A DNA stretch of 64,000 nucleotides from Blastocystis sp. Blastoise (Eukaryota > Protista > Bigyra: Opalinata). Numbering within the stretch: position 1 is the first letter of the stretch; every line of letters starts with the position of its first letter. The notes under the pieces were generated by a model, which was given only the letters and a program-made list of their open reading frames with translations, was not told where the DNA came from and searched no databases. The stretch spans positions 1,240,001 through 1,304,000 of the forward strand of contig JBBPEB010000004.1 in the NCBI GenBank assembly GCA_039096225.1. The letters run 5' to 3'. The position numbers were made by a program, and so were the translations under genes. Positions 29,468 to 63,837 of this stretch are shown in pieces.

Positions 29468-29472
29468 TTTTT
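29465..29472 (+). terminator. Pol III oligo-T terminator of the 5S gene
   Basis: T8 immediately after the 5S 3' end. Confidence 0.85.
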
Positions 29473-31468: not shown

Positions 31469-31535
31469 CTTCATGTCAGGAATTGAACCTGAAAACAATC
31501 TATAATGATTGTTTCTCTCCTTCTAGAGCATAAAG
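31469..31535 (-). ncRNA. tRNA-like (mascRNA-like) cloverleaf, copy A
   Basis: CTTTATG-CTCT(AGAAGG)AGAG-AAACAATC(ATTATA)GATTGTTT-TCAGG(TTCAATT)CCTGA-CATGAAG-T. Confidence 0.8.
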
Positions 31536-31554
31536 GGAGTTTATAAATAATAAT

Positions 31555-31585
<31 letters not shown>

Positions 31586-31616
31586 GATATAGATATATAT
31601 ATAGATATATAATAAG

Positions 31617-32043
31617 GAGGAAGTAGGAAGTAGGAAGTAGGAAGTAGGAAGTAGGAAGTAGGAAGTAGGAAGGAAGAAGGAAGAAGGAAGGATGAAGAAG
31701 TAAGAAGGAAGGATGAAGAAGAAGGAAGAAAGAAGGATGAGGAAGAAGGAAGTAGGAAGAATCAAGGATGGGGAAGAAGAAAGAAGGAAGAAGGAAGGAG
31801 GAAGAAGAATGAAGAACCAAGGTGAAGAAGAAGGGAGAAGTAAGAAGTAAGTACGAAGAATGAAGGAAGAATGATGAAGAAGGAAGAAGGAGGAAGAAGT
31901 AAAGAATGAAAAGAAAGAAGGCAGAAAGAAGAAGGAAGAAGGAAGAAGGAAGAAGGAAGAAGAAGGAAGGAAGAAGAAGTAAGTAGGAAGGATGAGGAAG
32001 AAGGAATAAGTAAGAAGGAAGAAGAACGAAGATAGAAAGAAGA
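31617..32043 (+). repeat. Polypurine low-complexity tract including (AGGAAGT)n and (AAGGAAG)n; pyrimidine-rich on the strand of the adjacent tRNA-like element
   Basis: Nearly C-free A/G tract read directly from the sequence. Confidence 0.9.
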
Positions 32044-32068
32044 AAAAAAAACTAAGAAGAATATTAAA

Positions 32069-32129
32069 CCTATATACAATAAATAAACATAATAAATAAA
32101 TAAATAAATAAATAAATAATAAACAATAA

Positions 32130-32160
<31 letters not shown>

Positions 32161-32596
32161 ATTAATAAATAAATAAACATATAAAAAAAAATGAATAAAT
32201 AAATAATAAATAAATAAATAAATAATAAAAAAAAATGTAAACAATAAATAATAAAAATAATAAATAAAATATAAATATATACCTTTAAAATAACCTTGAA
32301 CGACAGATTAAAGAAGGAAAATATTTAGCAACGAAGACCACAACACATCCATTGAAGTTTCTTTCCTATAGAATAAAAATTATTAATAATATATAGAATA
32401 AATTATATGTAAAGACTAAATAAATAATATTGATAATAAAAATAATAAATAATAAAAACGAATTAACAAAAAGAAAAACAGATCTTAAGAAATAAATAAT
32501 ATATTTATATACCTGATCATAAATAAACCATTTTACACAGCCAAGACCACTTCAAGAACACTTCACCACTATAACGAAGACAAATACAAAACAATC
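32069..32596 (-). other. Putative spliced non-coding exons leading into the pyrimidine tract and tRNA-like copy A
   Basis: GC-richer blocks 32596-32513 and 32365-32283 bounded by TAG/GTAT. The 32596-32513 block has stops in all three frames. Further acceptor at ~32069. Confidence 0.45.
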
Positions 32597-32965
32597 CTAT
32601 AGAAAATGAAATATTTTAAATGAATAAATCAATATATACAAATAAATATAATAATAATGACTAACAAACATCAAATAAATAACAAAAATATATAGAATAA
32701 AAGAATATAATCAAATATACAAAAAATGTAAAAAACTATGTTTTTTGGGTACCCTAAATATTTTTAATAGAAAATGACCCAATTATTACTTTTGTAAATA
32801 AATCAATGAAAATTCAAGGGTTTTTTAATTTCTATTAAGTTTTAAGAAGCATATTTTTAAAATAGACCCTATTCTTTAAAAGTAGAAATATAAACACAAT
32901 TTTTATATTAAGAGAAAACACTTATTTTTTATAATTAAAATATTATCTAAGATGCCTCAGAAGGC

Positions 32966-33703
32966 ATGATGCTGTCAAGATCGAAGTGTGTAGATGGAAA
33001 AATATACATTTCTCAAAAACTTTCAGGTATATTGTATCTATTTTTTATTATTATTTGTATATAGGTTCTTTTACTCAATAGTATCCAGTTGTGTATGTTC
33101 TTGGTCTTGGTATTACTTGCTCTGATGGTCTTAAAGGTATATATTTTCCATTTCTTTTTTTTTTTAATTATTTATTATATTATTTTAGGTTCTTCTATGT
33201 TATTTGTATCATACGGAGGCTGTGGTGTTGCCTGTTATGCTAACTGTGAAGGTATGTTGTCAATGATTTGTTTTTATTTTTTTAATTTTATTTATTTATA
33301 GGTTATCCTGTTGTTTTAAATGATGCTAATGGTTCTAATGATGTGATTGTAGGTTCTTCTTATTTTATTGAAGGTATGTTGCCAATCATTTAATTTATTT
33401 TTATATTTTATTATTATTTTTTTATTATTTCTATATATATATATAGGTTCTTCAGTTGCTGTGCATGTTGACAGTGGTGTTGATGATAGATGTCTGTGTG
33501 GTGTTGAAGGTTCTTCTGATGCTTTCAATACTGCTGTTGATGTTGTTGGTGATCAGATAGACTGTTCCTATGGTATTAAAGGTATATATATATATTGTCA
33601 TTCATTTATTATTATTTTTTTTTATTTATTATTTGTCTATTACTGTTTCTTTATAGGTTCTTTTATTGTTGTGTGTGTGGTTGCTGAAGGTGTTAATAAT
33701 TAA
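32966..33703 (+). pseudogene. Gly/Val/Ser/Cys-rich gene built from symmetric phase-1 exons (EG|SS junction repeat), with an in-frame TAG
   Basis: Exons 32966-33026, 33065-33136, 33189-33251, 33302-33373, 33447-33581 and 33657-33704; internal exons are all multiples of 3. The frame is open except for TAG 33079-33081 and TAA 33701-33703. Confidence 0.55.
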
Positions 33704-34039
33704 GGTATGTCTATTTTTTTAATTTAATTTAGTTTATTTTTATTTATTATTTATATATAGGTCCTTCTATTCTGATCGAGTCTTCTATTATAGGTAATGA
33801 AAGGTATATACTTATTTCTTCCTTTCTTTTTTTTTTAATTTATTAATTATCTTATCATTATATATAGGTTCTTCAAGTCAGTTATGATATGATACTTATT
33901 TTTCTGTTCCTTCTTTAGAAGGTATATATATTTTTATTGTTTATATATTTTTTATTATTTATTATATATAGGTGTCTTTTCTAATAGGGGATCTTATCAC
34001 CCTAATGTTGGCTTTTATTTTAATAATAAAAATATATCT

Positions 34040-34077
<38 letters not shown>

Positions 34078-34559
34078 CAAATATTTATATTTCTTTTAAT
34101 ATATATATCTATATATTTTATCTATATAGTGATGGTGTGAATAGTTCTTTAATGCTGAAGGTATATATATATATATTTATCTTTTATTTCTATAGGTTCT
34201 TCTAATTTGGTTGGCATACTTAACATATTATTTTATTTTTGTTTTGTTTTGTTTTGCTTTGTTTATTATTATTATTTTTTTTTTTCACAGATAATATCTT
34301 TCTATTATCTGCTTTCTTAGTATTATTTATTTATTTTTGTTTTGTTCGTTTTTTATAATTTTTATTGTGCTTACTATTAAGATAATTTTGAAATTAGTTA
34401 ATGTTATTAGTATGTGGTCCTTAATATTGTTTTAATTTATAATAACATTCATTTATCACCTAATCTGATATAGACTAGCGATATAATTACATCAATGATT
34501 GAGTTATTATTAAGTTTTGTATTCTCCACTTTCATTTGTATATTTAATTATGTGTAAAA

Positions 34560-35039
34560 TTGTAAGCAATAAGAAATGTGAAAAAATAGGTTATTAAATT
34601 AAGAGATTTAAAATTATAGAAATTGTTTAATATAGAACAATATGTACTCTACAACATATTAAAAAATAAGAGAATTTCATTTTTGACAAGTGAATTAACA
34701 ATGCGTTTGAGTTGTTCAGAAATTTTAAAGAGTTAGTCTATTCTTTTAAAATTGTGTTTTTGTTATACTATGAAAATTTTGACTTTTAAAAACAAGTTTA
34801 AAGGGATTACTTTTTTAAAATGTAGAAATGAATTATCCAAAGGACGAGATTCAATATAAAACATTTTATTTATCAAACTATTATTTATAGTCTGAATTAT
34901 ATTAAAAGGAGGGACAAAAATACTCTTGACAAAGTGTATGACCAAATGAAAAATGTTTATAAAGAGTATCAAAATGGTAGCTAATGTATTGATAGAGTTA
35001 TGTTGAGCATAGTGTTAAAATATAAGCTTTTTAAATTAA
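34560..35039. repeat. Further units of the ~244-bp repeat, cut by the Helitron B insertion
   Basis: GGACGAGATTCAA...AAGTGTATGACCAAATG matches the 30690-30810 unit. Confidence 0.7.
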
Positions 35040-35068
35040 CTAGCGGGTGGCATCGGCTTCGCCGATGC
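35040..35068 (-). other. Helitron 3' terminal GC-rich hairpin and CTAG end
   Basis: 8-bp perfect stem 35050-35068; CTAG 35040-35043 followed by T on the minus strand. Confidence 0.92.
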
Positions 35069-35320
35069 TATGTATCAATTAAGTCTATTTCAGTCAATTA
35101 TTTCTTGTTCTTTGTTATTTATTTATTTTTTTTTTGATAATGATAAAGAATTATAAACTAAACAATATAAATTTTAAGAATTAATTATTAACAAATAAAA
35201 ATAAACAAATATACAATTTAAAATTGAAAATTAACAAAAAGTATTCATAAACAATAAGAAAAATAAGAAAAATTAGAAAATCGAAAAAAACATATAACAA
35301 AATACAACAACAAAAATAAA

Positions 35321-38300
35321 TTATAATACTCCATTAAATACACAATTTTTAGTATACCATTCATTACTATTTCTGATTAATTGACCTTGATTAATATTAT
35401 CATTCTTTATAAACATTTTTATACCGTGAAAAGAACGTACTCTACTTAAAGCTACATATAATTGACCATGACTAAATACTGGTCTTTCTAAATAAATACC
35501 TACATTTTGAAATGTTTGACCTTGTGATTTATTAATAGTCATAGCAAAAGCTAATCTGACAGGAAATTGTTTTCTACTTAACTTACATGGTAAATCACTA
35601 TCATCTACTATAAATTTAATTCTTGGAATCAATACTATATCTTGTCCTTCTAACATATTATCAGTTCTTACTAATAATTGACTTCTTATTACATTTGGTT
35701 TTGTATCTAATACTACTAATCTCGTTCCATTACATAATCCTCTCTTTATATCTAGATTTCTTAATAACATAATAACTGAACCTCTTTTCAATTCTAAATC
35801 ATGAGGTGGACATCCTTGAGGAATTAAACTATTTAAATATTCTGTACTATAAGCATCTCTTTCATCTATATCTTCTACTTCTTCTGCTAATTCATCATGA
35901 CTATAATAATGATGAGAACTTGATCTTATCATATTTTGAATTCTTTCATTAATTAAATATGCTTGTTCATTTGTTGCACATAATATACAATTTGAAGCTA
36001 ATTTCTGTCTATATATATCTGTATTTGAATCATTAATAAATTCATGAAATATCTCTTCACCTATATTCTCATCACAAATACATTCTCTTGGAATATGTAC
36101 TTTATCTTTTGATAATAATCTTAATTCATTATTACATCTCTCACCATTTCCTATCTTCAATAAGAATTCTTTAAATTCTATTTCATTTGCATTTGCTCTC
36201 ATATTTTCTGTTAATTGAAATTGATTAAATTCATTCCAAATATCTAAATATTTAATACATAAAGGAACTATATCAGCTTCTTTTCCATGAGCTACTACTG
36301 GTAAACATTGTCTAAAATCTCCACCTAATACTATTGTTTTACCTGCAAATGGAATATCTATCTCATCATTATATAAGAATCTTAATAATCGATCAACTAC
36401 TTTTAAAGCATATTTAGAAGCCATAGGAGCTTCATCCCATATTATTATTTTACATTTCTTAATTTGTTCTGCTCTTGGAGATCCTCTTGAAATAGAAGAA
36501 GAAGAAGATTCATTTAATTCAAAAGGTAATCCAAATTGTGAATGAGATGTTTTTCCTCCACATAATAAAGTAGCTGCAATACCTGTCCATGCAACTGCTA
36601 TCACATCATCTATATTATTTCTTATTGATTTAATTATTGTATTATAAAGAAATGTTTTTCCAGTTCCTCCTGGTCCATCTATAAAAAACATATTATTTCT
36701 ATGAGGTTCATTATTATTCACTGATTCCATTATTGATTCATATACTCTTCTTTGTCCTTCATTCAATAAACTTATATTTCTTTCTGCTATTCTATGATCT
36801 TCTTCAAAATTAATTCCTTCAGATTCATAATCTATCATATTAGTATTATTATTATCAAATTGTGGTAAATTAGTACTTTGATATCCTCCATTATGTTTAT
36901 TTGTATCTATAACACTTCTTATATGATTTAATGCTCTAGGTATACAATATTCTTCTATTATTCTATTCACTTCATTATCTTCTGAATCTAATACATATGC
37001 ATCTTGTCTATCTATACTTATATATTCATTTATATATTGATGAAAGAAATCATCTATCATATCATTCCTATAAGTATTCCAAATAGATAATGGATCAGTA
37101 ATAGGATAATAAGAACAAAGTAAACCAAATAATTGTCTTAATTGCCAAGGAGTAGCATCTATTACTTCATTTGCAAGAATATCATAATATTCTGTATCAT
37201 CTACTAATAATCCTCTTGCTATACAGGATTCTCTATATGTATTATATATTTGAGCTTCATAACATTTTAAATCATCAAAACTTAATGGACGACTTACATG
37301 TAATAAAAGTATTCTTAAACAAAATAAATTATCATTTGTTGGATCTATATAAGGAAGTCTTCCTATTACTTTATTATTTCTTCTTCTATGATTCCATTTC
37401 TTTAATTTTGAATCATATGTATAATATTTAGGAAATTCTATATAAGTTAAAATAGAGGGTTCATCCATTGTTCCTCTTGATTCTTCATTTATATATAAAT
37501 CATTCATTTTAAAATATGCTGTTAACATTGTATCTTGATTCATTATTCTATCTAAAGCTCTTTCTTCATCTCCTTCCACATAATATACAGTTCTATCATT
37601 CTCATCATGAATATCTAAAGTAATTACACTCACATTACAATATTTTATTGGAAATCCATATATTCTCCACATAGCTTCAGGAGCTGATAAATATCTTCCT
37701 TTTAAATAAGATTTCATTTCATTTGGTATTTCTATTTCATTTCTATTTGAATTAATTGAATTATTATTATTAGTATTATTATTAGTATCTTCTCTTTCTA
37801 TTTCTGCATTAATAGAATCATGTCCTTTAAAAGCATATTTAAATATATATTTAGGACTTCTTACTGAAGAACATACTTCTACATTAATATGACAACCTAT
37901 TCTTAATGATAAATATGGATTATATGGAACTACCCATCTATTATCTAAAGTATTATTTACATTTGATTGCCTACCTATTACATATACTCTACCATTATCT
38001 CTTCTTCTATAATTTGGATATCCATCTTCATTTATTGTAGTTTCATTTCTATAATCTTTTGGGAATTTCTTTGAACAGTATTGTTGACCATTTATTTCTT
38101 TCATACATTGAGATGTTCTTGTATGAGGACCATGCATATTCATTGAAGTAATAATTTCATATAATCTTGGATTCTTTATAGGATCAGGAATTTCTGCACA
38201 TATATAGGAATCTATATCTTCAGGAGTTCTTAATTTATATTCATTCTCTAAAGTAATTAAAATATGTGCATGAGGCATTCCTCTCTTCTGATATTCTATT

Positions 38301-41300
38301 GAATAACATAAACATTTTACTTCTCCAAATACTTTAAAGTTTGTTATCAAATGAGTTAAGATTTTCAATTTTATATAAAATACTCTATCTACTATATCAG
38401 GTCTCATCCAAGGTTGTTGACCTTCTTCTAATGATTCTAAGATTTCTGGCCAATTTGGATTGCAAGTCATGGTTATAAATAAATCTGGTTTACCATAAGC
38501 TCTTACAATAGCCATTGTTTCTAAGTAAGAATTCTTCATATATCGAGGACCACCTACAAAACTTGATGGAATAATAACTGCTTTTCCCATTCTACTTCTT
38601 ATATATTCATCACTAAATCCATTTCGTATCATCTCATTCACTGTATCTCTAAATACAGAATATTTCTCTGATCTTAATTTTGTTTGATTATTTGCTATAA
38701 ATAATAATCTTGAATATTCTATTTTTGTAGCTGCATCAACCATAAATTGTAATAATAATTTTTCAAATAATAATAAATAATTCTTATGATTAGGATGTCT
38801 TGTATATAATAAATAGGAATAGAATTCTCTTAATGAAATAGTAGGTATAGTATAAAATTCATTTCCTAAAATATCTAATGGAAATCCTCTTTCTGATCTA
38901 TTTCTAAAAATTGGAATAATTCTCATCGATTTTGAATCATCTCCATTACTATCATTATTCTCTATATGATTACTATTTATTCTATAATTATTTCTATTAT
39001 TTAATTCATTTTCTACTTCTTCTATTATTTCATTCTCATTATTATTATTATTATTATTAGTTGTTGTAGAAATATTTCTATTATTATTATTATTATTTTG
39101 ACGATTTAAATGTAATTCAGAATTACGTATAATATTAGAAGTAGATTCTAAACTCCATAATGGTAATCCATAAGGAAACATTAATGGATATATTAAAGGA
39201 TCACAAAAAGGATTATTATAACTAAGATTTGTTATTTGTTGTTCTGATATATTATTATTATTATTTTCATTTTCATTTTCATTATTATTTTCATTTCTTC
39301 TTCTTCTTCTTGGATAACATGAAAGATTAATATTTGGTAAACCTTCATCATTTTGTTTTGGTATAATCATAGCTATTTCATTTGTTGTAGTAGGAGCATT
39401 AAATCTTCTTCTATCATCATAATTACTTATTTTAAATTGTAATTTTAAATTTACTTGTGAATAAGTAGTATTATTTATTCTTCTTGATTCTGTTACTTGT
39501 TCATGTAATGTTTTAAAAGATTCATATATTTTATTATTATTTCTTATCATAGAATCAATACTTAATAATAAATCAGAAGATAATTCTGAAAACATACTAT
39601 TTCCATTTCGAATATGAAGAGCTTCTTCTTCATCATAAATATATATTTGATTAAAAGAAGGAGGAGAATTATCAGAAGGATATAAATCACTCATAGAATG
39701 ATATACATTACCATGAACTCTATAAAAATATGGTCCTGGACCATTCATTCTTGTTACTACATTAGAACATGACATAGAAGCAAAAGCAAAAGCATTATTA
39801 TATCTTCTTATCTCATTTCTAAATAATTTATTATTTGGTGTCTGACTCTTTAATTGATTTAATAATTCATTTGGAAGATTTATAGGTGATTCTACTTTCA
39901 CTTTCCCATTATTACAACACATTGTATAATTTGAATTTCTTGTAATGATATAATCATGATCTCCTTCATAGTATTCAAATTGTATTCTTGAATCATTAAT
40001 TAAATTAATATATTTTTTATATGTAGAATATTTTGTAATCTTATAATTTGTTTTTTCTGCTTCAAAATGAAGAGCTTCACAATGAATACAAACATGATTC
40101 ATTTTACCTATATTATAATATTCATATATATTATTTCTATGAATATCTCTTTCATTCTCTTCTATTATTTGTTCTCCATTTCCTATACATAATATAATAA
40201 TAGTTTTATTATCATAAAGAATTATAATAATATAATGATATAATATTAAACATACTTAATTTAATACATGCTTCACAGTTTTCAAATCTTATTACAATTG
40301 GAATATTGCTATTATTTTCTTCATTATTATTTTCATTTTGATTATCTATATCTATATCATTATTATTTGTAGTATTTATTGGTTCTATTTGCAAAATAGG
40401 ATTATTAGTAGTATTAGGAGGAATAATAGGTGTGAAATCATTATCTGAACTTGTATCATCATCTGAAGTAGAAAAATCAAAACTAATTCTTCTTCTATGA
40501 TTATTTATATTTGTTGATAATAAATTATTATTATTAGGATTTTGAATAGGAGATATTTGATAATAATTTAATATATCTAATATCGATGATCTTGGCAGAG
40601 GAGGAATAATAGAATTATTATTATTATTATGAGAAGAAGAAGAAGAACTAATTATTCTTGAATCAAGAGGAGATAATCTAGGAGGTGTTATAATGAGAGA
40701 AGTAGAAGGAGATACTATTTGATTATTTGTATTAGAATTTGGTGTATTATGTATAGATGGAATATGATTATTATTGATACTATTATTATTATCTGAAAGT
40801 ATATCATTATTGTGTTGATTATGTAAAGGAGTTACAGGATTATTTAATATTATAGGTTGTGTATTATTATTTGTTTCATTATTTTCAAAAACAAAAGTAG
40901 AATTAAAACTATCATCAACTATTGATTGAGACATATTTTCATTGTTGTTATTATTTATGTCAGTTTCAATAAAATCTGTTTCATTTATTAAAGTTTCATA
41001 TATAATTCCATTATTTAAATTTGTATTATTATTAGAATCTGGCTCTATTAAATTGATTTCATTAATTAATGTTTCGATTGTGTTATTATTATATGAATTT
41101 GTATTATTACTTTGAGTTGAAGTATTATCTGAAATAGGAGAAGAAGAAGAAGAAGATATAGTTGCTATATTGTTTAGTTGTATTGGGTGTTGTTCAGTTA
41201 CTATTTCTTCATTATTTAAAGAATTATTTGTATTGAATAATGAATTGTCTTGATTAAAAGCATTTTGATTTTCGTTTAATATTTGGTCATTAATCCTTTT

Positions 41301-41374
41301 AGATTTGTGGGTATTCAAAAAATTCCCAAATATATCTCTTCTCTTAAGAGAATTAAATCGCTTTCTTTTGTTTC
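35321..41374 (-). CDS. Helitron RepHel transposase (HUH Rep + PIF1-family SF1B helicase) with an Asn-rich upstream exon
   Basis: Rep motifs PDLFITMTCNPNWPEI, EYQKRGMPHAHILI and KYIFKYAFKG. Helicase motifs GPGGTGKT, IIWDEAPM, GGDFRQCLPV, LCNGTRL, FAMTINKSQGQT and HGQLYVALSRV. N-terminal CxxC..CC Zn motif. Intron 40255-40183 joins exon 41374-40256 in frame. Confidence 0.97.
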
Positions 41375-41586
41375 CTATAGTATTATATATTATTAGTTTT
41401 ATATATAAGATTTTATTAATTAAATAATATTAATATTTATAAAAATATATATTTAAAATATTTTATTTTTTCAATCATTTTTAAAAATAATATATTTAAC
41501 TAAACAAAATAAAATATAACAAAGAAAAAAAGAAATAAAACAATACAAAACAATAAAATGCTTATAAGCAAAAAACAAAAAACTCC

Positions 41587-42753
41587 TTAATAATATTCAG
41601 GAGAAGAAACAGGATAAACAGGAGAAGTAGGAGGTGAAACCCTTTCATCATAATAAGGAGGACTTGAGAGATCCTCGTCACTTTCATTCTCCTGATTATT
41701 ATTATTTAAAGAAACTATCAAGTCATAATAGAATTTAAATTATAAAAATATTTACCTTGATTTGTTGGACATGTTGAAAATCTGTTTTTATTTGCAAAAA
41801 GAGTTGTGTTGTCTTTAAATATAAATTTATTTGTTATTTCTGAGTCTGTAGTACCTATATATATTTTAGGTTGTTTTCACATCAAAACATACCTTCACAA
41901 TTAATAGTAAATAACTTACTATTAAAAAATGTTTTCTCAAGGGTGTTTTTGTAGTTATTATTATCTAAAGACGAAACAATAAAAATATTTTTATTATTTT
42001 ATTAGACAATAATATACCTTTGTCTCCCTTGTTGTTAAGACAAAAGCAAGATGTATGAAACTCAAAAGTATTTTCAACTCTTTTACAATCTATATATATG
42101 ATAATATATTTTGTAAGTTAATGAAAATATTTTCGAGATCAAACATATCAAAAACAAAAGTGTGTAATATTAATTCGCAATAGCAAATAATTTACAACAC
42201 AAAAACAAAGCAAACACATATAAAATATAAAACAACAACATTCTATTTTGTATCTTATAGTTTAAATGATATATTTAAAATATTATATGAGTTCATAAAC
42301 TTTAAACTATATAAAGAGACATCATGAACTTTTATAAAGCAGAGTCGGGCATTTTATATAGGTTAAACTCAATAACAAATATATATATTCAAGTAAATTA
42401 TAAGAAAACAAAATAAAATAGAAATTGTAAAATATTTAATAATGTGAGAAATGAAAATGGAAAAGAATAAAAATAGAAAAATATTTAAGAAGAAAATATT
42501 TAATAAGAATAGATGAAAAATATCACAACATAAGAAAAATTAAAAAAAATTAAAAAGAATACTCGAACAATTTATATTAAACAAAGAGGACACATTATGT
42601 TTTTTATTTTTTTTGTATTTGAATTGTATTTCATCATCTTGTGAGTCTAAGAATAATAATAGATATATTATAAAACTAAAAAGATACCCTCGAATGAATT
42701 GTTGCTTGAACGCTTTTTTGAACTACTTTTTGACAGTGTTCGGCGGCTTTCTA

Positions 42754-42791
<38 letters not shown>

Positions 42792-44472
42792 GCATTGTTA
42801 GAAATACCCAAAAAATACCATAATTATTTTAACCTACCCAAAAAAAAAACGAATTGTTAGAAATACCCAAAAATATTTAAAATTTTTGTTAAAATACCCA
42901 AAAATTTTACAAAATTGTTAGAAATACCCAAAACTTTTTCAAGACTCTAAACGATTGGTACTTTGAAAACACAAATTTCTTAATAACCAATTAAAATTCT
43001 TTTTCTTTATTTTGTTAGAATTAGAAAAAAAAACTCCAGAATATTTTTATATTTGATTTATTATATTTCACAAGTGAAGCTTATACTATGTAAGACATTA
43101 AAAAAATTTAATAAATTCTCATAATAATGAAGAAAAATAACTATCTAAGTTAAAACCAGCATTTCATTTTACATATTTTATATAATTGCTAGAATTTTTA
43201 AACTAAATATAATATAAATATTTCAGATACTTTTATCAATTGACTGGAGTCATTTATAATGTAATAATATATAGTACTGCTCTCAAATAAAGCATTTAGA
43301 AAACAACAATGCTAATTTTCCTGATTTTTTGGTGATTTTCCTCTATAAAAATAATATTTGCAGTTATAAATCACCAAAAAATACATTTATTTATTTTTCA
43401 CTATATCTACACGACTAAAAAGTTAATTACTACAAATTGTCGGCAACTATGTCTGTATATAGACGAAAAACACATTTTCATTATTATTTTTTAATAATTA
43501 GACAATTGATTCAAGTCAGCCACAAGAAGATGTGGAAAATCGTTTTTGTATGAATAAGGTTGATTACAGTGACTTCAAAAATAGTGAAGAAATTAAGAAA
43601 TTTGAAAATGAAGAAACATATGGAGTACAAATTATGTACGAAAATAAGTCTAAACTCAAAAGTGATGTCTCAATTCAAATGCAAAAGCTAGGATATCCAA
43701 TTAAGGTTCAAAAATCAGAAAAAGGAAGAATTATTTACAAATGTTGTGTTTCCGATTGCCCGTTTATGCTTCATTTCCAAGGTGACGACGTTTCTGGATG
43801 GATAATGAAAAGATACTGTCATCATGACTCAACTGTATGTTATTTAATTAATTATTATAGTTTATACTTATTATTAATATAGAAATGCAATCGTTTTAAT
43901 ATGATTTACATTAAGCTTAACAAACAAAATAAAATAGATTATCAAATTATTAAGACAAGTAACTAAATATAAATATAATATATAATGTATATAATATTCT
44001 ATTATATACAGTGATAAAAAATCGAATTAAAAATCATCAATTTAATATAAGGTATATATATATATCAATATATAAATTGTGAGAGAGAAATCTATACATT
44101 GAATAAAGAAGGAAAAAGAGGAAAATAAATATATAGAGAGAAAAAAATGAAATACAGTAGTATATGTATGTGAAAAGTGTTATATATTAATTCAATGTAT
44201 GAGAGTAATAGAAGAAATATCCACCTATATATATAGAGAAAGGAAGATTATATAATATATACAGAGAGAAAGAAAGAAAGAAAAATTCTATTATATATAT
44301 AGTAAGAATGAAAGAAAGAAACATTTATGAATATATAAAGAGAGAACGACAGATATATATATATAGAGAGAGAGAGAGAAAGCGATAGAAAAAAATATCT
44401 AATATATATATATATATTGAGAGAGTAAGAGATGGAAGAGATAGAGAGAGATGCATAGAAAGAAGCAAAGAA

Positions 44473-44533
<61 letters not shown>

Positions 44534-47500: not shown

Positions 47501-48747
47501 AAGAAAAAGCATGTGAATAAAAATGGAAAAAGAAGAAACTAAAAAGAGAATAGAAGGAGAGGATCAAAATATGAATAAGAAGGAGAAGGATAAGAAGGAT
47601 AAGAATGACAAAGAGAAGGAGAATAAGAAAGAAAGAACGAGAAAGAGAAGAAGGAAAAAAATAAACAGAAGAAGAAAGAGAAGGAGGAGAAGAATGAGAA
47701 GAAAAAGAATAGGAAGGAGAATGACAAAAAAAAACAAGAATGACAAGAATGGCAAAAGGAAAAAGGAGAAGAAGACAAATTATAGAAGGAGGAGAAGAAG
47801 AAAAATTATAGAAGAAGGAGAAGAAGAAAGATTAAGAAGAAGGAGAAGAAGGAAAAGGAGGAATCAAAAGAAGGAGAAGGAGGAAGGAGAAGAAGATGAA
47901 AAAATAAAATTATAAGAAGAAAAAGTAGAAGAAGAAAGAGAAAGAGAAGAACCACAAAGAAAAGGGGGAGAAGAAAGAAATTATAGAAGTAGAAGAAGGA
48001 AAAGAAAAGAGAAAAAGGAGAAAGAGAATAAGGACAAGAATAAGGTAAAAGTAAAAGTAAAAGAATCAATAGAAGAAAAAGTATGAGAAGAAGAATATTG
48101 AAAAGGAGATAGAGAAGTAGACGAATAAGTTGAGATAAAATGAGAAAGAAGAAGAAATAAAAGTATGGTAGTAGAAACAGAAGTAGAAATAGGTAGAAAT
48201 AGATGGAAAAGGAAAATGAGAATCAGTAGAAGAAGAAGAAGAAGAAGAAGAAAATGAGAAAGAGAAGAAGAAGAATGAGAAATAGAATATAGAAATGAAA
48301 TAGAAGAAACAAGAATGAAAGAAGTAGAAGAAGAAAAAATAATACTAATAATACGAATGTGAATGAGAATAAGAAGAAGAAATAGAAGAATAGCAATAAT
48401 GGAATGAAAATGAAAAAAAAAAGAAGAAGAAAGAGAAATAGAAAAAGAAGAACAAGAAGTAGTTGTAATAGAAATGGATGTAGAAGCATAAAAAAGTAGT
48501 AGAAGCAAAAGTAGGAGTAAGAGTTGAAGTTGGAGTACAAGCGAAGTAGAATAGAAATATAAGTAGAAATATAAGTAGAAGAATGAGAAGTAGTATTAGT
48601 AATAGTGTAGAAGTCGAAATGGAAGAAAAAAATAACAGTAAGTAGTAGTAGTAGAAATATGAGTAGAAGAACAAGTATAAATAGAAGAATAAAGGAAAGA
48701 AGGAAAGAAGCTGAAGTAGAAGAAGTATAAGGAAAAGAAGGTAAATA

Positions 48748-48780
<33 letters not shown>

Positions 48781-51700: not shown

Positions 51701-54700
51701 ACAATATGAAGTGTTAGTAGAAGGAAAATGAGATAAATAGTAGAATAAAAAGAAGAATATTAAGGAGAGAAAGTTTAGAAGTGGAAGGAGTACAATAAAA
51801 ATAAGAATGAAGTGAATAAGAATAGGAATAAGAAGAATAAAAAGGAGAAATGAAAATAGAAGGAGAAGAAAGAAGATATAAAGGAGAATAATAATAAGTA
51901 GAAGGAGAAATAAAAAATAAGTTTAATAAGAATGAAAATAAGAATAATAGAATAAATTGAAGATAGAAAAGTATAAGAAAAGAAGGAAGAAGAAGGAAAG
52001 TGATAAGATGAAGAATTAGAATAAATAATAAGAAAATGAAGAATACGAATAAGGAGTATGATAAGCAGAAGTGAATAAAAAGAATGAGAAATGGAAGGAC
52101 AATACTAATAATAATAATAAGAAAAAGAAGATACAAAAGGAGGAGGAGAAGAATGAAAAAAAGTTAAGGCTAACTAGAAGCAGAATAGTATAAAGATAAT
52201 GATAATAAGATTGTAGAACAAGAAATAGAAGTAGAATAAGAAGAGAAATGATTAGGAAGTATAAGTAAAGTAAGAAGAGAAAGATATCATGAATAAGAAG
52301 AGAAAGATATCATGAATAAGAAGAGAAAGATATCATGAATAAGAATAAGAATAAAAAATGAAGTAGAAATACAAGCAGAAATAGAAGTAGAATAAGAGTG
52401 TAAAAATAAGGTGAATAAGAATAAAATGTGGAAGATGAAGAAGTAGTAAAAGTTGAGTGAATAGTAAAGAGAAATGGAAAGTAGACACTAAGGCTTATGA
52501 AATGAAAACAAAGGAATAACACCAGAAATAAGAAGTAGAATTAGAATAAGAAGGAAATTAAGAATGAAATGCTGAAGTAGAAGAAGAATTAACAGGAGAC
52601 AAGAATAAGTAGAAGGCGAAGCAGAACGAGAATAAGCGTAAAAATAATAATAATTAAAGAATAATATCAATTAAAAGAAGGAAAATAGGAATGAGAAGTA
52701 AAATAGAAATTACAATAAAAAAAATAAGTAAAAGTAACTAGATAAGCAGAATGAAAATATGAATAGTATGATGAAGGGAAAGGAGAATGAGAAAGTCGCA
52801 TATGAAGGAAAGCGAGAAGTAGCACGAGGATAGTAATAAAAATAAGAAAGAGAAATTAAAAAATAAGGAGACGTGGAATAAGAAGGAGAAAGTGAGATAT
52901 ATGGAAAAACTAAATAAGAAACAAAATATTAAGTAAAATAAGAAGTAAAAAAAGAAGTAAAAAAAGAAGTAACAACAATATATGAAAAAGAAGAAGTTGA
53001 AGAAGTTGAAGAAGGAGAAGAAAAATAAGAATAAGAGAAATATATCTAAGAATAATAAAAAGAAGATGACAATAACAAGGAGAAGTAAATTTACAAGGAG
53101 AAAAAAAAAGAAAGGAAACATAAGTGAAGAAGGAGAATAAGGAGAAGTAGAATAAGATGTACAGGTGAAGAAGAATAAGTAGTAGACGTAAAGTAAGAAG
53201 AATAAGAATAAGAATGAAAGGATAAGAAGAAGGATAAGAAGAAGAAGAAGAAGAATGAAAAGGAAAGGATAATTAGAAGTATAATAATAAAATATAATAG
53301 TAGAATTCGTGAAGAGGTAATAGTTATGAAAACAAATAAAGAAAAATTAATATCTATACAAAAAAGAAGAAAAAGATGTAGTAAGAAGTGTATTAGAATG
53401 AAGAATGAAGAATGAAGAATGAAGAATGAAGAATGAAGAATGAAGAATGAAATTTTGTAAACCAAAAAATTTAATAAATAAAAGAATAATAAATTGCAAC
53501 TTTCCTAATAGACTAATAATATTTGTAATCAATTTTTTGTTTTATAGAAGAAACAATAAAAATACCACTAGGTCTAAAGAATATATAATATTATAAAAAT
53601 AGAATATTAATAATTATAATATAAAGAAAAAAATAACATATATATTATTAATAGTCAGTTAAAACAAACTAACTATATTATTAAATACATATATACCTTA
53701 ATAAAGACTTGAATCATCGCAATCTGATTCCCAAGTTGTGCTTAAATACGCTAAGATTCTATAAATAAATACGTAGAATAAATTAATAAAATTAATTAAA
53801 GTATAAACATATTAGAAAAACAACAAGATAGAAAAATAGGAGCTAATTCAATTATAAAAAGTATAATATAAAATTAAAAAAAGATAGGGATGCTATTAGA
53901 ATGATAGTGATGTATTAATAGCATAGACAAGAAATAGATATAGCAAAAAATAAACAAAATGAGAGAAAATGAAAAATATCTATATACCTTAGATTCATCA
54001 GTATTGTTTACCAAGACCTTTTGAATTGATCTGAAACCAGATGAAGTTTGTTTTGAGCATATAAACAAGAAATAACCCATTGATCAACTGATTACTATAT
54101 AAAATTAAATATTTGAAGAGAGTAAACTATATAATATATATATTTATAACTAGAAAACATACATAGATTCATTTTATATGCTTATAATGAAAATATATGA
54201 AATAAATCAATATTTGATTTTCAAGAAATAACCATTCTGAGGATGGAAACAGAGGAAAAACAGCCTAAATAGCGGAATTAATCTCTTCTATAGAAACTTT
54301 TTTGGGTTTCAGTGAACAAGTTTTAAAAATAATTTCTAGAGATTCAAAGTATGGTATAAAAAGTCTTCTTTGATATGGTCCCTATTCTTGGAGTCTTTCA
54401 GAATCACTTAAATCTTTGGAAAACCGTATTCAGCTACGGCTTAAATGAACTCCTAAAAAAGAATATTTTTTAAATATTATTATATGGATTATTTGCTTAT
54501 TTAGAAGGTTATTTTATTATTTATATTTATATTATATTTTATTAGGTAGATTATTATAGATTAGGCTTGAAATGAATCCAGATAATAAACCAATTAGTGA
54601 TTCATTCTTTCACGTATATACTTATTTGATTTACCATTATTTATATAGGTTTAGAAACATGATTTAGAGAGCCCGGTGGAGTTGGCTACAATATTGGAAG

Positions 54701-55894
54701 AAAACGCAATGATCGGAATTTCCTCTTTAAGAATATTCTTTGGTGTATGTTCTAGTGGTATATTATTTTGTTTTTTGTTTGTATATTTAATTATTTATTT
54801 AGGAAATTCAAAAGAAAAAAGTAATTGGTCTCCATCTACTAAGAAAATTGATGTCTAGGTCCTTCTTTTGATTTTTATTATTTTATTTTTTTATCAGAAG
54901 TATATATTTATGTTATTAATGCTATATTGTATCTAATTATATAGAAATGGCAAGTGATTATTGTTTTGGAATTTTTGTAACTTTTCGATTTCAGCACAAT
55001 TATCGAGTCCTTAAAAGTATATAAATATATTAAATAATTATTTTTTTCTATAGATATATGGAGTAAATTGATATGGTTATATATACAAAAAAAAATACTA
55101 GAAGAATATGGCTAAAAAGTATATATTTTTTTATTTTTATATTATTAAAATTATATATATTTGTTTAATTAAATTTGTATATTGTAGTTATTTATTTTTG
55201 TTATAACTGAGGCTCTAACATTGATATATGGTTCAAATATATATATATATATTTTTATTATTTATAAATTCTTAATATTTTATTAATTTATTATATTATT
55301 TTTCTATATAGGACTATTAATTATCATTCTTTTATTATAGTTTATATATATATATATGTATTATTTATTTTCGATATATTTTATTCTTATTCATATATAT
55401 AGTATTATTAAGCTATGTACTCATTAGCTTCTCTACATCAATACTATTATGTGACTAGGTATATTATATATATATTTAATTATTAGCATATTATTTTCTA
55501 TTACTTCTTAATATATATATATATATATTTATATATTAACTAGTATTTTTATATAGAGAATGTGACGTTTCCCTTATGTTATAAACTTCATGGTCATCAA
55601 TTTTTATATCTAAGGTATATAGTTTTTATATGTAAGTAATTGTTTTATTGTAGTATATTGTTTCACATTATTTTTATATATTATTCTATTTTCCGTACAA
55701 TAATTTTTTATTTTTTTTATATAATTTATATTATGTACCTATAATTACTAATAATATCCTATTGTTTATATTTCTGTTATTCATGTCTCTATAGTTTTAT
55801 TAGTTATATAAAAATATAACTAGTAAAACTGTAATTACATATATATATTATATAGGTGTTATATAAATATACGAATGTTGCTTTAGTTGAAGAA

Positions 55895-55977
<83 letters not shown>

Positions 55978-56863
55978 GTTATAGACTTTTATTGTATTCT
56001 TTTTATATTATTATTTTATACATTTTTCTCTCTATATAACATATTCACAGATATATTTACCAAATATATACTCTTTAGAAAATTGATATATGTTTTATTT
56101 TGGAAGTTGATAATATATACTAGAATCAGTTCATATCAATTGTTTATTCTTAAACTTTATATATATATATATATATTATTTATCAAAGTCAAAGTTATAT
56201 ATAAATAGAATAATGAAGAATTATCTATATATAGTGGTCTTTAGTTCTATTACTACATTATTTTTATGTATTTAAGGTATATATAAATATATTATATATA
56301 TACTTTTATATATACTTATTATATAAATATAAACTTATAGACTTATATATAGTAATATATCAGTTATCCTTTTATTTTTCTCATGAGTTTTTAAGTATAT
56401 AGTCTTTTTATCTTATTATATATATAATACATTTTTTATAATTGACACAAAAGGTAATATTATTTGTATATATAATTTTATCTCAACTATTCTTCTATTT
56501 TATTCTTTTATATCACTTTTTCTTTCTATAACTATATTATGTATTATCATTTTATAATATAATTTGTTTATAGTTAATTATGTATATATATGTAGTAACA
56601 GTAATAACTCTTCTTTTTATCTCTTTTGTTCAATTATACTAGTATATTTTCTATGATAATATATATACTTTGTATTTATCTCCTTTTATATATATTATCT
56701 ATTTATTTTGATACTAATTATATATACACTTAGTGTTATGTATACTACATTTTCTTTTTGTTTATAATACTATACTAATATCATTTTTATTATATATAGG
56801 ATTAAGGATATATATAATTGTTTTGAATGATTTACTTTTGTATTATGTTAAACCTTATTTTCT

Positions 56864-56906
<43 letters not shown>

Positions 56907-57624
56907 TTTTCTTTATATTTTCCAGCTTTCTTTTCTATTATATACATTTATACTCACTATAGTGTACTATTATTAATATATATAGTTTGTGAAGATATTA
57001 AATAGATTCTACGTAAAGAGTATGTATTTTAATTGTTTTAATACATATACATAATATGTTCCTATGTTATATTTAAATATATATATTTTTTACTTTATAT
57101 ATATATTTTTCTCATAATTACATATATGTATATATTCATATATATATATATATAGACTTGGTATTCCCTTAATTAATTCATGCCGTCTTATTCATTCATT
57201 TTATATATATAGTCTATAATCAGCTTTTATGAATTATTACAAATAATGTATACAATCCTTTTGTATGTATTTTATTTATATTTATATAGCTTGCTATGTA
57301 GTATTTTCTATTATAACAATATAATGTGTTTATTTTATTTATATATATATTAATTTTTTTTTAATCTATATATAGAACGTATCTTTAGCTTATCTTCTAT
57401 GTTCGTATACAACTTAATATAGATAGTATATATTGTATATATTTATTATATATATTGTTTGCTAATATTCTATTTTTAACTTTATTCTTAATTACATTAT
57501 ATTCTATTGTATATTGAAATAATCTTTTTATTCTACATGTTTTTATTATTTAGGTTAGTATTAATAGGTGTAATAGAGTATATATATATATAATTACAAT
57601 ATTTTTATAGTCTCTTTTCTTCAA

Positions 57625-57657
<33 letters not shown>

Positions 57658-59265
57658 TATTCATATAATTAATATTCCTTAGACTGAATATGGTCAGTAG
57701 CAATCATTAATAGATTGCTATCAGGTTCAATTCCTGATCTAAGGTTGTATACTATATTTTTTATAAAAAAATTTAAATGTTTTTTCCCTATAGGTATTCT
57801 CATTCATTAGAACCAATATGAATAAATACATTGAGTTTCATGCAATTGAATCAACTCTATACGTCGTTAGTCGCTCTTTTATAATAATTTTAGATACCTT
57901 TACTTAAAACCAAACACATTCACAATTACAATCACCCAAAATTATCTAGTCATTATTTTGTTGAGTTATGTATCCTATTCATCAATTTTACACACAAATA
58001 AAAAATAAATATTCATCAATAATATCTTGAAGTCTATAAACACGCAATACATTATTTGTTTATACTCTTAAAAGGCATTTCTACTGTTTATATTAATATG
58101 ATTGACACTAAGAATCATTTCTAACCAACTTTAAAAACTTTTGAAGAACCTTAACAAATTTACATTACCTAAAAAACTATTATAATCAACTTTGGCTTAT
58201 ACGAGTCATGATTAAATTTAAATTATTAATAGAAATTCATAATAAAGGCATTCTATCTCAACATATCACCAAGAGAAATCAATTATGTTTGTAACTTCCC
58301 TAAAATTAAATTAATTACTAAAAGACGTATTTTAATTAATGTAGAATTCAAATTCAAACACACATAAACTCATCATTTCTGACAATTTTACACATTTAGA
58401 CAATCTAGTGAGTATCACATAATCAACTAATTCTTGTTGTCTTCATCAAGTCTAACGATTTCCTTATGACAAGAAGCATCAATTTTATTTTATTCAACAC
58501 TCTATAAATAATTAATCAATTAACTAATTTTATTTACTTAAATACATACTCCAATAACAACAACAAGACATCAGGAGTGAGAATAACTGATTAAACTATT
58601 TAAATAAAATAATTAATAATAAAAAGTAGAAATATTAGGATTTTAATAATTTTTAATAAGTTAATTTATAGTGAAGTTTCAATAATCATATAAAAAATAT
58701 GATTAATTTAGCTTTTGTATGTTCTAAGCATATATCTATCTATATATAGTCCCTAGGAGTATATTAGAGTACCTTCCAGTCTCCATTGGCAGATTGATCT
58801 AAACTGGTATGTTCTCTTTCTCTATTATGAGCTAATCTAGGTGATGTAAAGTGGTTGTACTAGATGGTCAGCTATTGTGTCGTGGTTATAAATGGGATGA
58901 TGTGACGTCACCATATAAAACTATTTCTTTAGGTTTTATCAATGAGTGGGAAATGCTTGGCTATGTTAACTGAGCGTTGCTTGAAACTTTCAAAAAATCA
59001 ATTGGTCAAATGTCTAAACAGATTTGTCTTGAATCATACAGAATCATGATCTATTCACATAATCACTACATCTACAATTCAAATATTCATATTTGAAGTT
59101 ACTTGGTTTAACTCATATTCTGATTCTAGATGTATATATTTTCTACATTTTTTTTATATAAATATAATTATATAATTATATTAATGTTTATATAGGTTGT
59201 TATATAGCTATTAAATCTAGTTCTTGCTTTTCTTGTCACTAAATTCTTGGTTCTTCTCTTTTATG

Positions 59266-59296
<31 letters not shown>

Positions 59297-59451
59297 TATT
59301 ATTAACTTCTTATGTTTTGATTTTATAATATAAATTTCTTAATTTTTGAAAATTATTTCTATTTATACATATTATTAGTTTCTTCTATGTACTTATTTGA
59401 AGTTTTTATTAATATTAATTTATGCACTTTTTTCTTTTTTTTTAATTATAT

Positions 59452-59488
<37 letters not shown>

Positions 59489-61606
59489 CTATTTCTATAT
59501 ATATTTGGTTTTCTTTTTGTCTATATTTGCCTTCTTTTCCATTTTATTCTTATTAATTTCTTTGTTATACTTTATATTTTTCTTATAGTCATCGTGTTGA
59601 TTCGGGTAATTGTTACTACTATTAATACTACTCAATATCACATTTCATTATATAATATACCTTTTTTCTTTAGTTCTTACTTATCATTCTCCTTACATTC
59701 TTCTTATCTTTCCTTTTTGTGTTCTCCTTCTATAATTACATCTTCTCTTCATTTCCACCTCTATATCTTAATCTTCTTGTTCTTCTTCATTTTCTTCTTA
59801 TGTCATTACTTCCTTTTCATATCTTTCCACTTCTACTTTTCTATTCGCTATTCCTTTTAATTCTTCATCTAGACGTTCTTTCTATATTCCTTTTTCTTTT
59901 ATATATCCTTATTCCCCTTCTCCTTTTCTGTCTCCAATATTCTTTTCCTACTCGTTCTTCTTCATCTATTTATCCTTATGCTTCTATATCTTGTATATAC
60001 CATTCTTTTGCTTCTCAATCTCAATCTCCTTCTCTCAATCTCTTCTGTATCTCTTCTTCTTCCTCTTCTTCTATATATCCTTATTCCCCTTCTATATCTT
60101 ATATATATCTTTATTCTTCTTCTATATCTTATATATATCCTTCATCTTCTATATATCCTTCGTCTTTATATTCTTTTTCTCTCTATATATCCTTCGTATA
60201 TATATTCTTTTTCTCTCTATATATCCTTCCTCTGCATTCCTTCTTCTATTTGCCATTATTCTTCTTATACATTTTATCTATATCATTCTCCTCCTATGTT
60301 TTCTATTTTTTCTATATATCCTTATTCTTATCTTTCCTCTTCTATATATCGTTTTTCTTCTATATATCTTATTTTTGCTTCTTCTTCTATATATCTTTCT
60401 TCTTCTTCTATTTATTGTTCTTATTCTTCTGTATCCTCTATTTATCATTATTTTCCATAGTATTCTTCTACTGTATCTTCTTCTTGTCTCTTTCTTCTTC
60501 TTAAATATCTCCTTCTTCTCCTTCTTTTCTTCTATATCTTCAATATACCTTTCTTTATCTATATATTTTGATGTTCATTATTTCTCTATATATCTTTATT
60601 CTCCATATTCTTCCGTATCTTCTTCTTCTTTTTATGCTTCTCTTTATTCTCCTTCTATATATCTTTCTTTTCCTTCTTTTCCTTCTCAGTCTCCTTCTCT
60701 TCATTTTATCATTCTCTTTCTCTCTATCTCTATCTCTTTCTATTTCTATATCTTCTATATGTACTTTTTCTTCTTCTTCTTCTATATATCATTATTTTCC
60801 TCCTCCTCCTACTCTTCCTTCTTCTTTTATCATCATTCTTCTACTTCTTCTATCATTTCCTTCTTCGATTTCGATATCTCTATATATCATTTTTCTCCTT
60901 CGTCTTCTCCTTCTTTACTCTTTATATTATTCTAATTTTATTCCTTTTCATCTATTTCCTCTTTATCTCAATATTCTCTCGATTTATTACACATAATATC
61001 AATTATATATATATATATATATAATCTTTTATACTCTTTTTCTTTCATCATATACTATCTTTTTTCCTACATTTACACTTGTACTTCCTATGTGTACTCT
61101 ACTTATATTTTTATTTCCTTCTTAATTTATTCTCCCTTGTTCTTCTTCTAACTCTCTTCTCTATCTGTTTTCTCTTCTTCTCCTATACATGACTTTTTAT
61201 TATCCATCTATCTTTCTTTTCTTCTTACCTTCTTATCTTATTTTTTACTCGCTTCCTATTCTTATTCTTCTTCTTTATATATATGCTTTTTATTCTCTAT
61301 CCTATTAACTAACTCCTCCTTCTTCTTCTTCTCATTTACTTAATATTTTTCTTTTTCCTAATTTATTTTCCTATATTCTTCATATTCATGTTTTCATTTT
61401 TTTATATTCAATTCCTATCTTTTATCATCTTATATCTATATATATACTTCTCTCCATATTTAAACTATTTCTATCTACTATACTAATTAATATAGTATTT
61501 ATTTTTATTAATAAAAAGATTTTATCCTTTTTATTTCTTATTTATACTTATTATTTTATATGTTTCTTGTTTATATATTTAATTTATATATTAAAATAAT
61601 TTTTTC

Positions 61607-61650
<44 letters not shown>

Positions 61651-63154
61651 GCAACAGTAATATGTATTCTATTTGATAAATATATATGAAAGAGATAAGT
61701 ATATATTTATATATCTATATTATTGATTCATCTTTTTTAGATATATATATTAAATATTGTATTTTATTATTATTTATTATTACTCTTATGCTCTATAAGG
61801 TGAGAGGCTATCATAATTCGATAACAATCAGGTTCAACTCCTGACATAAGTCATTCTATATATATATATATATTTTTTTTTATTTAATAAACGTTTTAAT
61901 TATATGTTCTTTTTACACTTATTAATGTATTTATTAAATTATTTATAGCTCTTCATCCTTCAAAACTTCATAGTTTCTGAAATGAGTTGTAATCTGTTTT
62001 ATTCTCAAAAGTGTAGCTTATTCAAAATATGTTTGAATTGAGTTAAATACAGTTTTAAAACTTAGATTCATTTTTTATTTTCAAAATATACTCAAATACA
62101 GAGTATATTCAGCAATCATTAATACTTTAACGACTGTAGTTTATTATTTTTAACTGAATTCTGGTCAGTATACTCAATACAAACAACTAAGTACAATACA
62201 TACGTATTCATGATTTTTAAACAACATTTTTCCATTTCGACATTTACTTGATCCATTATAAAACTATTTGTCCTTTTGATATAGTAAAGAAAAACGAATA
62301 CCATATACCAAACAAAACGTTTTAACTTGAATCTCGTCATCTATTAAATATTTTTCTTAATCAATTCACAGTTCATACTCTTAAAACAGTTATTTAAGAT
62401 TAATATTTATGTATTTGTCCTTATACAATATTTTCATGACACTGTAATAATATATATGAAAATTAAAAGAGTCAAGAAAATCTGTTAATTATCAAAAAAT
62501 AAGTTCTATTTACTAAAATCATATTTATAAGATTTATAAACTTATACCATATAAAAACATAGCTCTTATATAAAGTATTGGCTGAATTAGTTTATTTGTA
62601 AGTAAATTAAAAGTATGTTATATAACGTAATTTTAGGTTACTCTTTTTAATCAGATTTATTTCATAGCTATTTATGGTTTATTTGTCTGTTAATCTTATT
62701 TTTTAAAACAATTACAGACAATTATATTATGATCCTTGTCTATTAAGTTATTTTATTGAATTAATAGTATAAATAAAAGTTATATAACAAAATAAATGTA
62801 TATATTGATTAAAATAAGGAATGAATATAAATAAATAAAAATAGATAAAATTGCCAAAAAGCAAATTCTTAGAATTATATAGTACAATAGACGAACTTCT
62901 AATAGAAACTTAAAAATCGATTGATTGGATCAAATAGTCAAATCCTAACGTCATAATATGAATTATTCTTTTCATTTTTTATTAATTTAAATTCTTGAAA
63001 TACATCTAATAAACACGGTTATTATATAAATTAATACGATTGGACAACGAAATCAAAATGTTAACAGAAATTTTTGGGTATTTCTAACAAATCATACAAA
63101 AAATTGGGTATGTATACAAATCAATAGGGAAATCTGGGTATTTCTAACATTTTT

Positions 63155-63766: not shown

Positions 63767-63837
<71 letters not shown>

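Follow-up and report, generated by a model that had tools for sequence, protein, structure and literature searches.

The 64,000-nucleotide stretch of DNA analysed here (the window; assembly GCA_039096225.1, contig JBBPEB010000004.1, positions 1,240,001 to 1,304,000) comes from Blastocystis sp. Blastoise, the tortoise isolate Rus-B of Lind et al. (PMC10690189), a gut protist of the stramenopile lineage. The window contains three short elements that fold into a cloverleaf lacking the U8/R9 linker of tRNA, and that are best explained, from their sequences, as copies of a minimal non-decoding tRNA mimic exchanged as a module among the DNA transposons of the tortoise Blastocystis. Neither tRNA nor Helitron or MULE transposons are mentioned in the main text of the genome paper (PMC10690189). 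Copy 1 (31469–31535, minus strand; lineage X1) has a 7-bp acceptor, a 4-bp D stem, a 6-nt D loop ending in GG, an 8-bp third arm, a 5-bp T stem and a 7-nt T loop, with no linker. Copy 2 (57677–57744, plus strand; lineage W2) is a fully paired 7/4/8/5 cloverleaf, and copy 3 (61785–61850, plus strand; lineage W3) combines a 6-bp acceptor and intact D and T arms with a partly unpaired third arm.

The coordinates and strands given for the three elements by the first-pass annotation were found to be correct, and its linker-less four-way cloverleaf was obtained for each isolated element, with the D stem directly after the acceptor strand and z-scores of -3.4, -5.0 and -1.3 for copies 1, 2 and 3, respectively. 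Of the arm sizes it listed, the 6-7 bp acceptor holds for all three copies and the 6-8 bp third arm for copies 1 and 2; copy 3 is the weakest, with a 6-bp acceptor, a terminal U-U and only about 4-5 third-arm pairs. The 17-nt T-arm, described as invariant, does occur exactly three times in the window, where 0.20 matches would be expected by chance even allowing 3 mismatches, but variants exist in the wider family, including a compensatory change of the first pair from U-A to A-U. Similarly, the T discriminator is seen in the window copies but is one of several states in the family (T 11, A 7, C 1). As predicted, copies 1 and 2 gave no standard tRNA call, while for copy 3 ARAGORN proposed a tRNA-Ile(aat) whose register is shifted and whose acceptor pairs poorly. 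Running ARAGORN with introns at a relaxed score gave spurious calls only, and neither the window nor a 221-nt stretch, when scanned with Rfam, matched a tRNA or mascRNA model at E up to 10.

All three copies lie inside transposons, as had been proposed. The right half of the window is a nest in which a family-1 Helitron has inserted into Helitron X, and MULE-1 into that family-1 element. Helitron X, a non-autonomous element of which the 5' part is present (29531–35039, plus strand), carries copy 1 and is broken by the other Helitron at about 35040. It begins with TC after A, ends in a hairpin and CTAG before T, and has a related autonomous RepHel element: it is a derivative of autonomous Helitron family 4, sharing the 5' end of that family and having a 3' hairpin-CTAG related to its own. 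Elsewhere in the genome, complete X copies of 6.9 kb contain a second mimic (lineage X2) about 200 nt from this 3' end. The 3' part of the autonomous family-1 Helitron (35040–42788, minus strand), nested in X and itself split by MULE-1, contains no mimic; the protein of its RepHel open reading frame (ORF; 35321–40102) shares 99% identity with Blastocystis sp. Blastoise proteins. MULE-1 (42789–63156, plus strand; 20.4 kb) carries copies 2 and 3 and has imperfect terminal inverted repeats (TIRs) and a gene for a Mutator transposase of 853 aa with MULE and SWIM domains (43449–46805, plus strand). Another genomic copy shows a target site duplication (TSD) of 9 bp, in line with the 9-10 bp expected for MULEs. 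The identical transposase is found on 7 contigs, in DNA that is about 99.9% identical, and as a second MULE-1 copy (99.92% identical) also has both copies 2 and 3, these are fixed parts of the MULE.

Distribution of the family in the genome

We searched 21 loci of this one genome, fetched with transposon proteins as handles and amounting with the window to about 0.54 Mb of deliberately transposon-rich DNA, using a structural descriptor and two covariance models whose E-values are rough. This gave 28 intact copies, representing 19 distinct sequences and six lineages, and one decayed copy. All intact copies but one lie within identified Helitron or MULE families. In family-4 Helitrons and X, X1 precedes RepHel in antisense orientation, with orthologs of copy 1 at L001, L012, L014 and L015, and H2 is positioned in the same way in family-2 Helitrons. 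X2, also antisense, is found in X and in mini-Helitrons of about 2.6 kb, about 200 nt before their 3' end; every Helitron-borne mimic is antisense to its element. W2 occurs in MULE families 1, 2 and 3 and W3 in families 1 and 2. Copy 2 is identical in the second MULE-1 copy and has orthologs in both MULE-2 and MULE-3; that the diverged MULE family 2 would contain orthologs of copies 2 and 3 had been predicted beforehand, and both were found. The orphan copy, L011a, stands at the end of a C/U-rich tract in L011. No mimic was found in about 104 kb of hand-delimited host-gene flanks, and the fetched DNA held no canonical host tRNA gene. One candidate, at L016 9150–9213, considered as an intact copy upstream of a MULE, was rejected: it is the decayed X2 copy, in a dead Helitron remnant, and its T stem is destroyed.

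Several other features were observed around these transposons. Helitron X is inserted about 60 nt past a 5S rRNA gene (29349–29467) in a unit with TTAGGG-like repeats (29005–29531), and a tandem array of such 5S/TTAGGG-like units adjoins a MULE-1 insertion at L002 (79–9341). A series of short repeated exons starting Gly-Ser-Ser (32930–34250, plus strand) matches the 5' part of the family-4 RepHel gene and is kept in the non-autonomous X. Internal repeats of about 490 bp are subterminal in family-4 Helitrons and X (window 30170–31000; X positions 650–1920 and 5590–6100), always downstream of the mimic. Tandem 27-nt micro-exon-like repeats with TA-rich introns between them lie in the 5' part of the family-1 Helitron gene (window 63330–63860, minus strand; L001 10220–12000). 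Helitron-like elements of RepHel families 2 and 3, at L003, L006, L010, L011, L013, L016 and L195, have a 3' hairpin followed by CTTGT instead of CTAG. Tyrosine-recombinase (PF00589) genes were found at L016 (11470–12860, minus strand) and L195 (25003–26044, minus strand), the former in an element that ends in the 3' hairpin of Helitron families 2/3 and is possibly a recombinase-carrying Helitron derivative or a Crypton-like element. Outside the nest, a large intron-containing gene for a Cys-rich repeat protein (19448–25600, plus strand) showed no Pfam match in four ORF pieces.

The fold and the evidence of selection

RNAalifold, unaided, returned the same linker-less 7/4/8/5 fold. In an alignment of 15 distinct sequences, 95% of the cells were paired, none of 500 shuffles was as good, and slid controls were 40-45% paired. 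The compensatory stem changes reported between the window copies were borne out in this alignment, with double-sided changes at 14 of 24 pairs. As this test ignores relatedness and its alignment was fitted to the model, a count within lineages was made on a hand-parsed set, in which 16 of 26 stem changes keep pairing compared to about 1/6-1/3 expected (binomial p from 3e-3 to 3e-7 at null rates of 0.33 to 0.17). All 10 breaks affect either the third arm, the pair that closes the D loop or one of the two outermost acceptor pairs; the T stem, D pairs 1-3 and acceptor pairs 3-7 are free of them. Every T-stem pair (95/95) is Watson-Crick, and the D-loop GG and the T-loop TTCAA are invariant at the sequence level in all 19 variants.

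Seventeen of the 19 variants have no junction nucleotides, two of these being W3 sequences with their partly unpaired third arm, and the other two variants have one unpaired base on either side of the third arm. The would-be U8/R9 linker corresponds to acceptor pairs 6 and 7, which covary with the bases directly after the T stem and show four pair types each across lineages; because they vary together, the fold cannot be that of a mis-registered tRNA. Position 26 and the variable-loop positions of a canonical tRNA are likewise paired and covarying, and the 5-bp anticodon stem, the 7-nt loop with Y32, U33 and R37 and a stable anticodon are absent, in addition to the missing Rfam match and the single, mis-registered ARAGORN call. 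The third arm is 6-8 bp long, with a loop of 5-7 nt that usually has A first and U sixth. The loop at the anticodon position had been noted as not conserved, and its triplet indeed varies across the 19 variants. As the first pair and the discriminator vary too, both decoding and a conserved synthetase identity are argued against.

The comparison of diverged transposons bears on whether these elements are decayed tRNA pseudogenes or heads of short interspersed elements (SINEs) that hitch-hike neutrally. Such an origin would agree with the T arm and D loop, which are clearly of tRNA ancestry, and with the ARAGORN call on copy 3. Between MULE-1 and MULE-2, which are 71% identical in the region, copy 2 has three changes, each to G·U, and copy 3 has unchanged paired acceptor, D and T arms and a rewritten third arm; X2 variants are 88-97% identical to each other, with downstream flanks at 66-95%. 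The arms thus stay fixed while flanks diverge 20-30%, which speaks against neutral decay, as do the four pair types at each of pairs 6 and 7 where U8/R9 would be. Furthermore, the mimics have no SINE body, tail or TSD of SINE type, sit at fixed positions within DNA transposon families, and differ from the truly dead copy with its destroyed T stem. Neutral decay is already largely refuted and we consider it extremely improbable.

The stems contain 16 G·U pairs and 2 A·C, from which it is clear which strand is functional. This G·U bias fits RNA and counts against an element acting as DNA, be it a TFIIIC/B-box insulator or a single-stranded fold for rolling-circle transposition, with the RNA irrelevant. 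The invariant B-box and the single-stranded stage of Helitrons would be in keeping with such a role. However, a B-box does not need a covarying acceptor stem, MULEs have no single-stranded stage, and the fold is on the strand opposite to the Helitron sense, so that a DNA-level function seems to us improbable. At the level of sequence, these comparisons show the element to be a strand-specific, selected four-way RNA fold, in which the features kept are those that tRNA end-processing enzymes measure, namely a 12-bp acceptor and T helix capped by an elbow of D-loop GG and T-loop UUC. The proposal of a selected, non-decoding mimic of the mascRNA type is strongly supported by the 19 variants, the covariation, the strand-specific wobble pairs, the orthologs in diverged flanks and the decayed fossil copy.

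Putative non-coding units upstream of the mimics and their probable processing

A putative spliced non-coding unit lies ahead of copy 1 (31536–32700, minus strand) and would be divergent from the RepHel promoter. It has putative short exons at about 32596–32513 and 32365–32283 and a C/U-rich terminal stretch from about 32069, and its splice-like sites are retained in four diverged copies, with one donor in L015 lacking the exonic G. Copy 2 ends a putative spliced, AT-rich non-coding unit (54450–57676, plus strand) with conserved splice-like sites: on the plus strand 10 of 36 donors and 7 of 21 acceptors are conserved between MULE-1 and MULE-2, compared to 0 of 20 donors and 2 of 17 acceptors on the minus strand. 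Only conserved sites were considered, as base composition makes raw motif counts uninformative. Copy 3 is at the end of a putative C/U-rich non-coding unit (58700–61783, plus strand) with ORFs that, like others in the C/U-rich upstream tracts, have no Pfam match and were treated as chance. Two non-coding blocks next to these units (57750–58700 and 54000–54450) are about 79-93% identical between MULE-1 and MULE-2, far above the transcript bodies, and are probably promoters; the block after copy 2 is common to MULE-1, MULE-2 and MULE-3.

In MULE-3 the mimic-bearing unit starts at the right TIR, is directed inward and has the mimic at its end, which leaves 2 kb to the convergent transposase. The second unit of MuDR-type MULEs encodes a MURB-like protein; the MULE-3 unit has the same orientation, inward from the right TIR and convergent with the transposase, but looks non-coding and ends in a tRNA mimic. 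In lineages X1, W2, W3, H2 and L011a the sense-strand U-skew is positive over about 0.6-5 kb upstream and about zero 100-200 nt downstream of the mimic, a drop that resembles the one after coding genes. Five of the six lineages thereby stand at the end of a U-rich, partly spliced-looking unit, which suggests cutting in cis.

RNase P in all its forms reads the distance from elbow to acceptor, and stramenopiles are reported to have the protein-only form PRORP (PMC10941002). The small RNAs mascRNA and menRNA lack the tRNA linker residues, keep the GG/T-loop elbow and are substrates of RNase P and RNase Z (PMC11693755). As the 12-bp helix and elbow are conserved in our family, and as mascRNA and menRNA of like build are cut, it is highly probable that the Blastocystis mimic is cut by RNase P (PRORP) and RNase Z as well. 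Whether its main role is in cis, through RNase P/Z cleavage of non-coding transcripts made by RNA polymerase II (Pol II), we judge to be about an even chance. The mimic would then stand at the end of Pol II non-coding transcripts that are antisense or divergent to the transposase or directed outward to a terminus, and cleavage at the mimic would create a 3' end independent of poly(A). The exposed downstream 5' end would bring transcription to an end, so that the transposon would limit its own antisense and read-through RNA, and the released 68-nt small RNA may be a by-product or have a role of its own. No A-rich tract or element for nuclear expression (ENE) was found directly upstream of the mimics, where the adjoining 30 nt are rich in TA/T and A tracts do not exceed 4. 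As a triple helix is thereby lacking, the upstream RNA would probably be unprotected and turned over. The first-pass annotation's suggestion of an RNase P/Z processing signal is favoured by the context of the mimics, while the logic of MALAT1, a long non-coding RNA (lncRNA) protected by a triple helix, does not apply.

Several observations weigh against such cutting in cis. X2 is strongly constrained in the mini-Helitrons of about 2.6 kb, where only about 200 nt separate it from the element end; these have no internal long precursor, and cis cutting would need transcription reading in from the host. The fetched parts of Helitron families 1 and 3 contain no mimic, which therefore cannot be indispensable. 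The MULE transposase reads in the same direction as copies 2 and 3, hence antisense control cannot be universal. In addition, MULE-1 has a 7-kb C/U-rich, apparently non-coding unit on the minus strand (47000–54150), convergent with the transposase and 74-80% conserved in MULE-2, and no mimic was found at its end. Finally, AG-ending U-rich tracts past several copies are compatible with an intronic location.

This last point leads to the possibility that the mimics are tRNA-like RNAs encoded in introns and released from spliced transposon host transcripts, in the manner of small nucleolar RNA host genes. Copy 2 is flanked by a conserved donor-like site, 100 nt ahead of it, and by an acceptor-like site about 45 nt past it, and three variants have a branch-point-like CTAAC and an AG after copy 1. 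On the other hand, the G-less tract ahead of X1 contains no donor, MULE-3 and one X2 variant have not kept the downstream AG, motifs of this sort are common in DNA of 78% AT, and the skew ends right past the element. An intronic origin is thus improbable in our view, if slightly less so than a function as DNA.

The mimic may also be a self-contained RNA polymerase III (Pol III) gene with a type-2 internal promoter, whose product, a small tRNA-like RNA, would be matured by RNase P/Z and serve as a decoy or regulator, or whose transcription would hold the transposon end open and block Pol II read-through. The T arm had been proposed as a B-box, and it is a perfect match in all copies; in the D arm, R9, Y11, A14 and GG are retained with the spacing of an A-box, although A-box position 10 is C in all copies. 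Constraint on the mimic in promoter-less mini-Helitrons is also accounted for by this explanation. A T4-T9 or interrupted T run follows most copies at 4-22 nt, but in four intact copies it is distant (67-90 nt in three X2 copies and about 105 nt in the MULE-2 ortholog of copy 3), in contrast to the 5S gene with its adjacent T8. The oligo-T that had been offered as evidence for Pol III turned out not to be diagnostic, as 6 of 20 coding stop codons of this genome likewise have a T5 in the next 25 nt. Pol III alone does not explain the position at the end of same-strand U-rich units, and we regard it as a possible but rather doubtful account. The Pol III and cis-cutting models are mutually compatible, not exclusive. 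A further-reaching reading, to which we give a probability of roughly 0.4, is that two unrelated DNA transposon superfamilies independently acquired and traded a portable, convergently evolved mascRNA-like module that co-opts host RNase P/Z to cut their own antisense and read-through transcripts.

Relation to known tRNA-like elements and significance

Organellar and archaeal t-elements are non-decoding tRNA-like folds that serve as RNase P/Z punctuation in longer RNAs, mostly as degenerate tRNA copies next to organellar mRNAs or rRNA. Unlike these, the Blastocystis mimic is nuclear, multi-copy and transposon-borne, with its own covarying fold. The Pol III tRNA-like RNAs of mobile elements and viruses include tRNA-derived SINE heads, gammaherpesvirus TMERs and adenovirus VA RNA, which share the B-box, the A-box-like D arm and the lack of decoding with our family. 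The mimic differs from them in having neither SINE body and tail nor downstream hairpin cargo, in the selection on its full acceptor stem, and in its spread via DNA transposition.

The closest likeness is to mascRNA and menRNA, which have a four-way junction without tRNA linkers, a compact D loop ending in GG, a UUC T loop, a 7+5 bp acceptor/T helix and a longer, variable stem at the anticodon position (PMC11693755; PMC12941219). The location at the apparent 3' end of a non-coding unit is shared as well. In contrast to them, the Blastocystis mimic has no upstream U-rich ENE or A-rich tract, is 68 nt long with an 8-bp third arm, matches no Rfam model, and is carried by stramenopile Helitron and MULE DNA transposons. 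Only jawed vertebrates have MALAT1 (PMC10869381). As the triple helix and A tract, an Rfam match and the right lineage are all missing, the likeness is best read as convergent and not homologous, and by analogy the mimic most likely works like mascRNA and menRNA without belonging to them.

Pattern scans outside Blastocystis found no family member among the matches listed. A loose pattern gave canonical tRNAs or noise among the matches listed from JGI metagenomes (at least 120) and IMG/VR, and the best model score among 100 metagenome loci scored from the matches listed was 36.5 bits, compared to 52-98 for members. Stricter patterns had no match in IMG/VR or GTDB, and among the matches listed by protein searches there was no related Helitron or MULE of another Blastocystis strain. 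The annotation had recognised no such family in a protist or a DNA transposon, and our literature searches found no precedent either; a review-analysis of 2025 gives MALAT1 and NEAT1 as the only lncRNAs matured by the tRNA machinery (PMC12941219). The RNA family is real, selected and not described before. Linker-less mimics as a kind are already known from mascRNA and menRNA; what is new is a convergent, transposon-borne one.

The linker-less mimic of MALAT1 and NEAT1 had looked like a vertebrate one-off, and an independent stramenopile family reveals which of its features are required. The 19 natural variants are a ready-made mutational series for the substrate rules of RNase P/PRORP and RNase Z. 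Even if the Pol III explanation is true, the mimics would be a new class of transposon-encoded small RNA. If trading and cis cutting are true, they would represent mascRNA-type lncRNA processing outside vertebrates, and a device for RNA punctuation or anti-silencing, encoded by transposons, of a sort not described before. The family also suggests that DNA transposons have a hitherto undescribed means of handling the transcripts they make.

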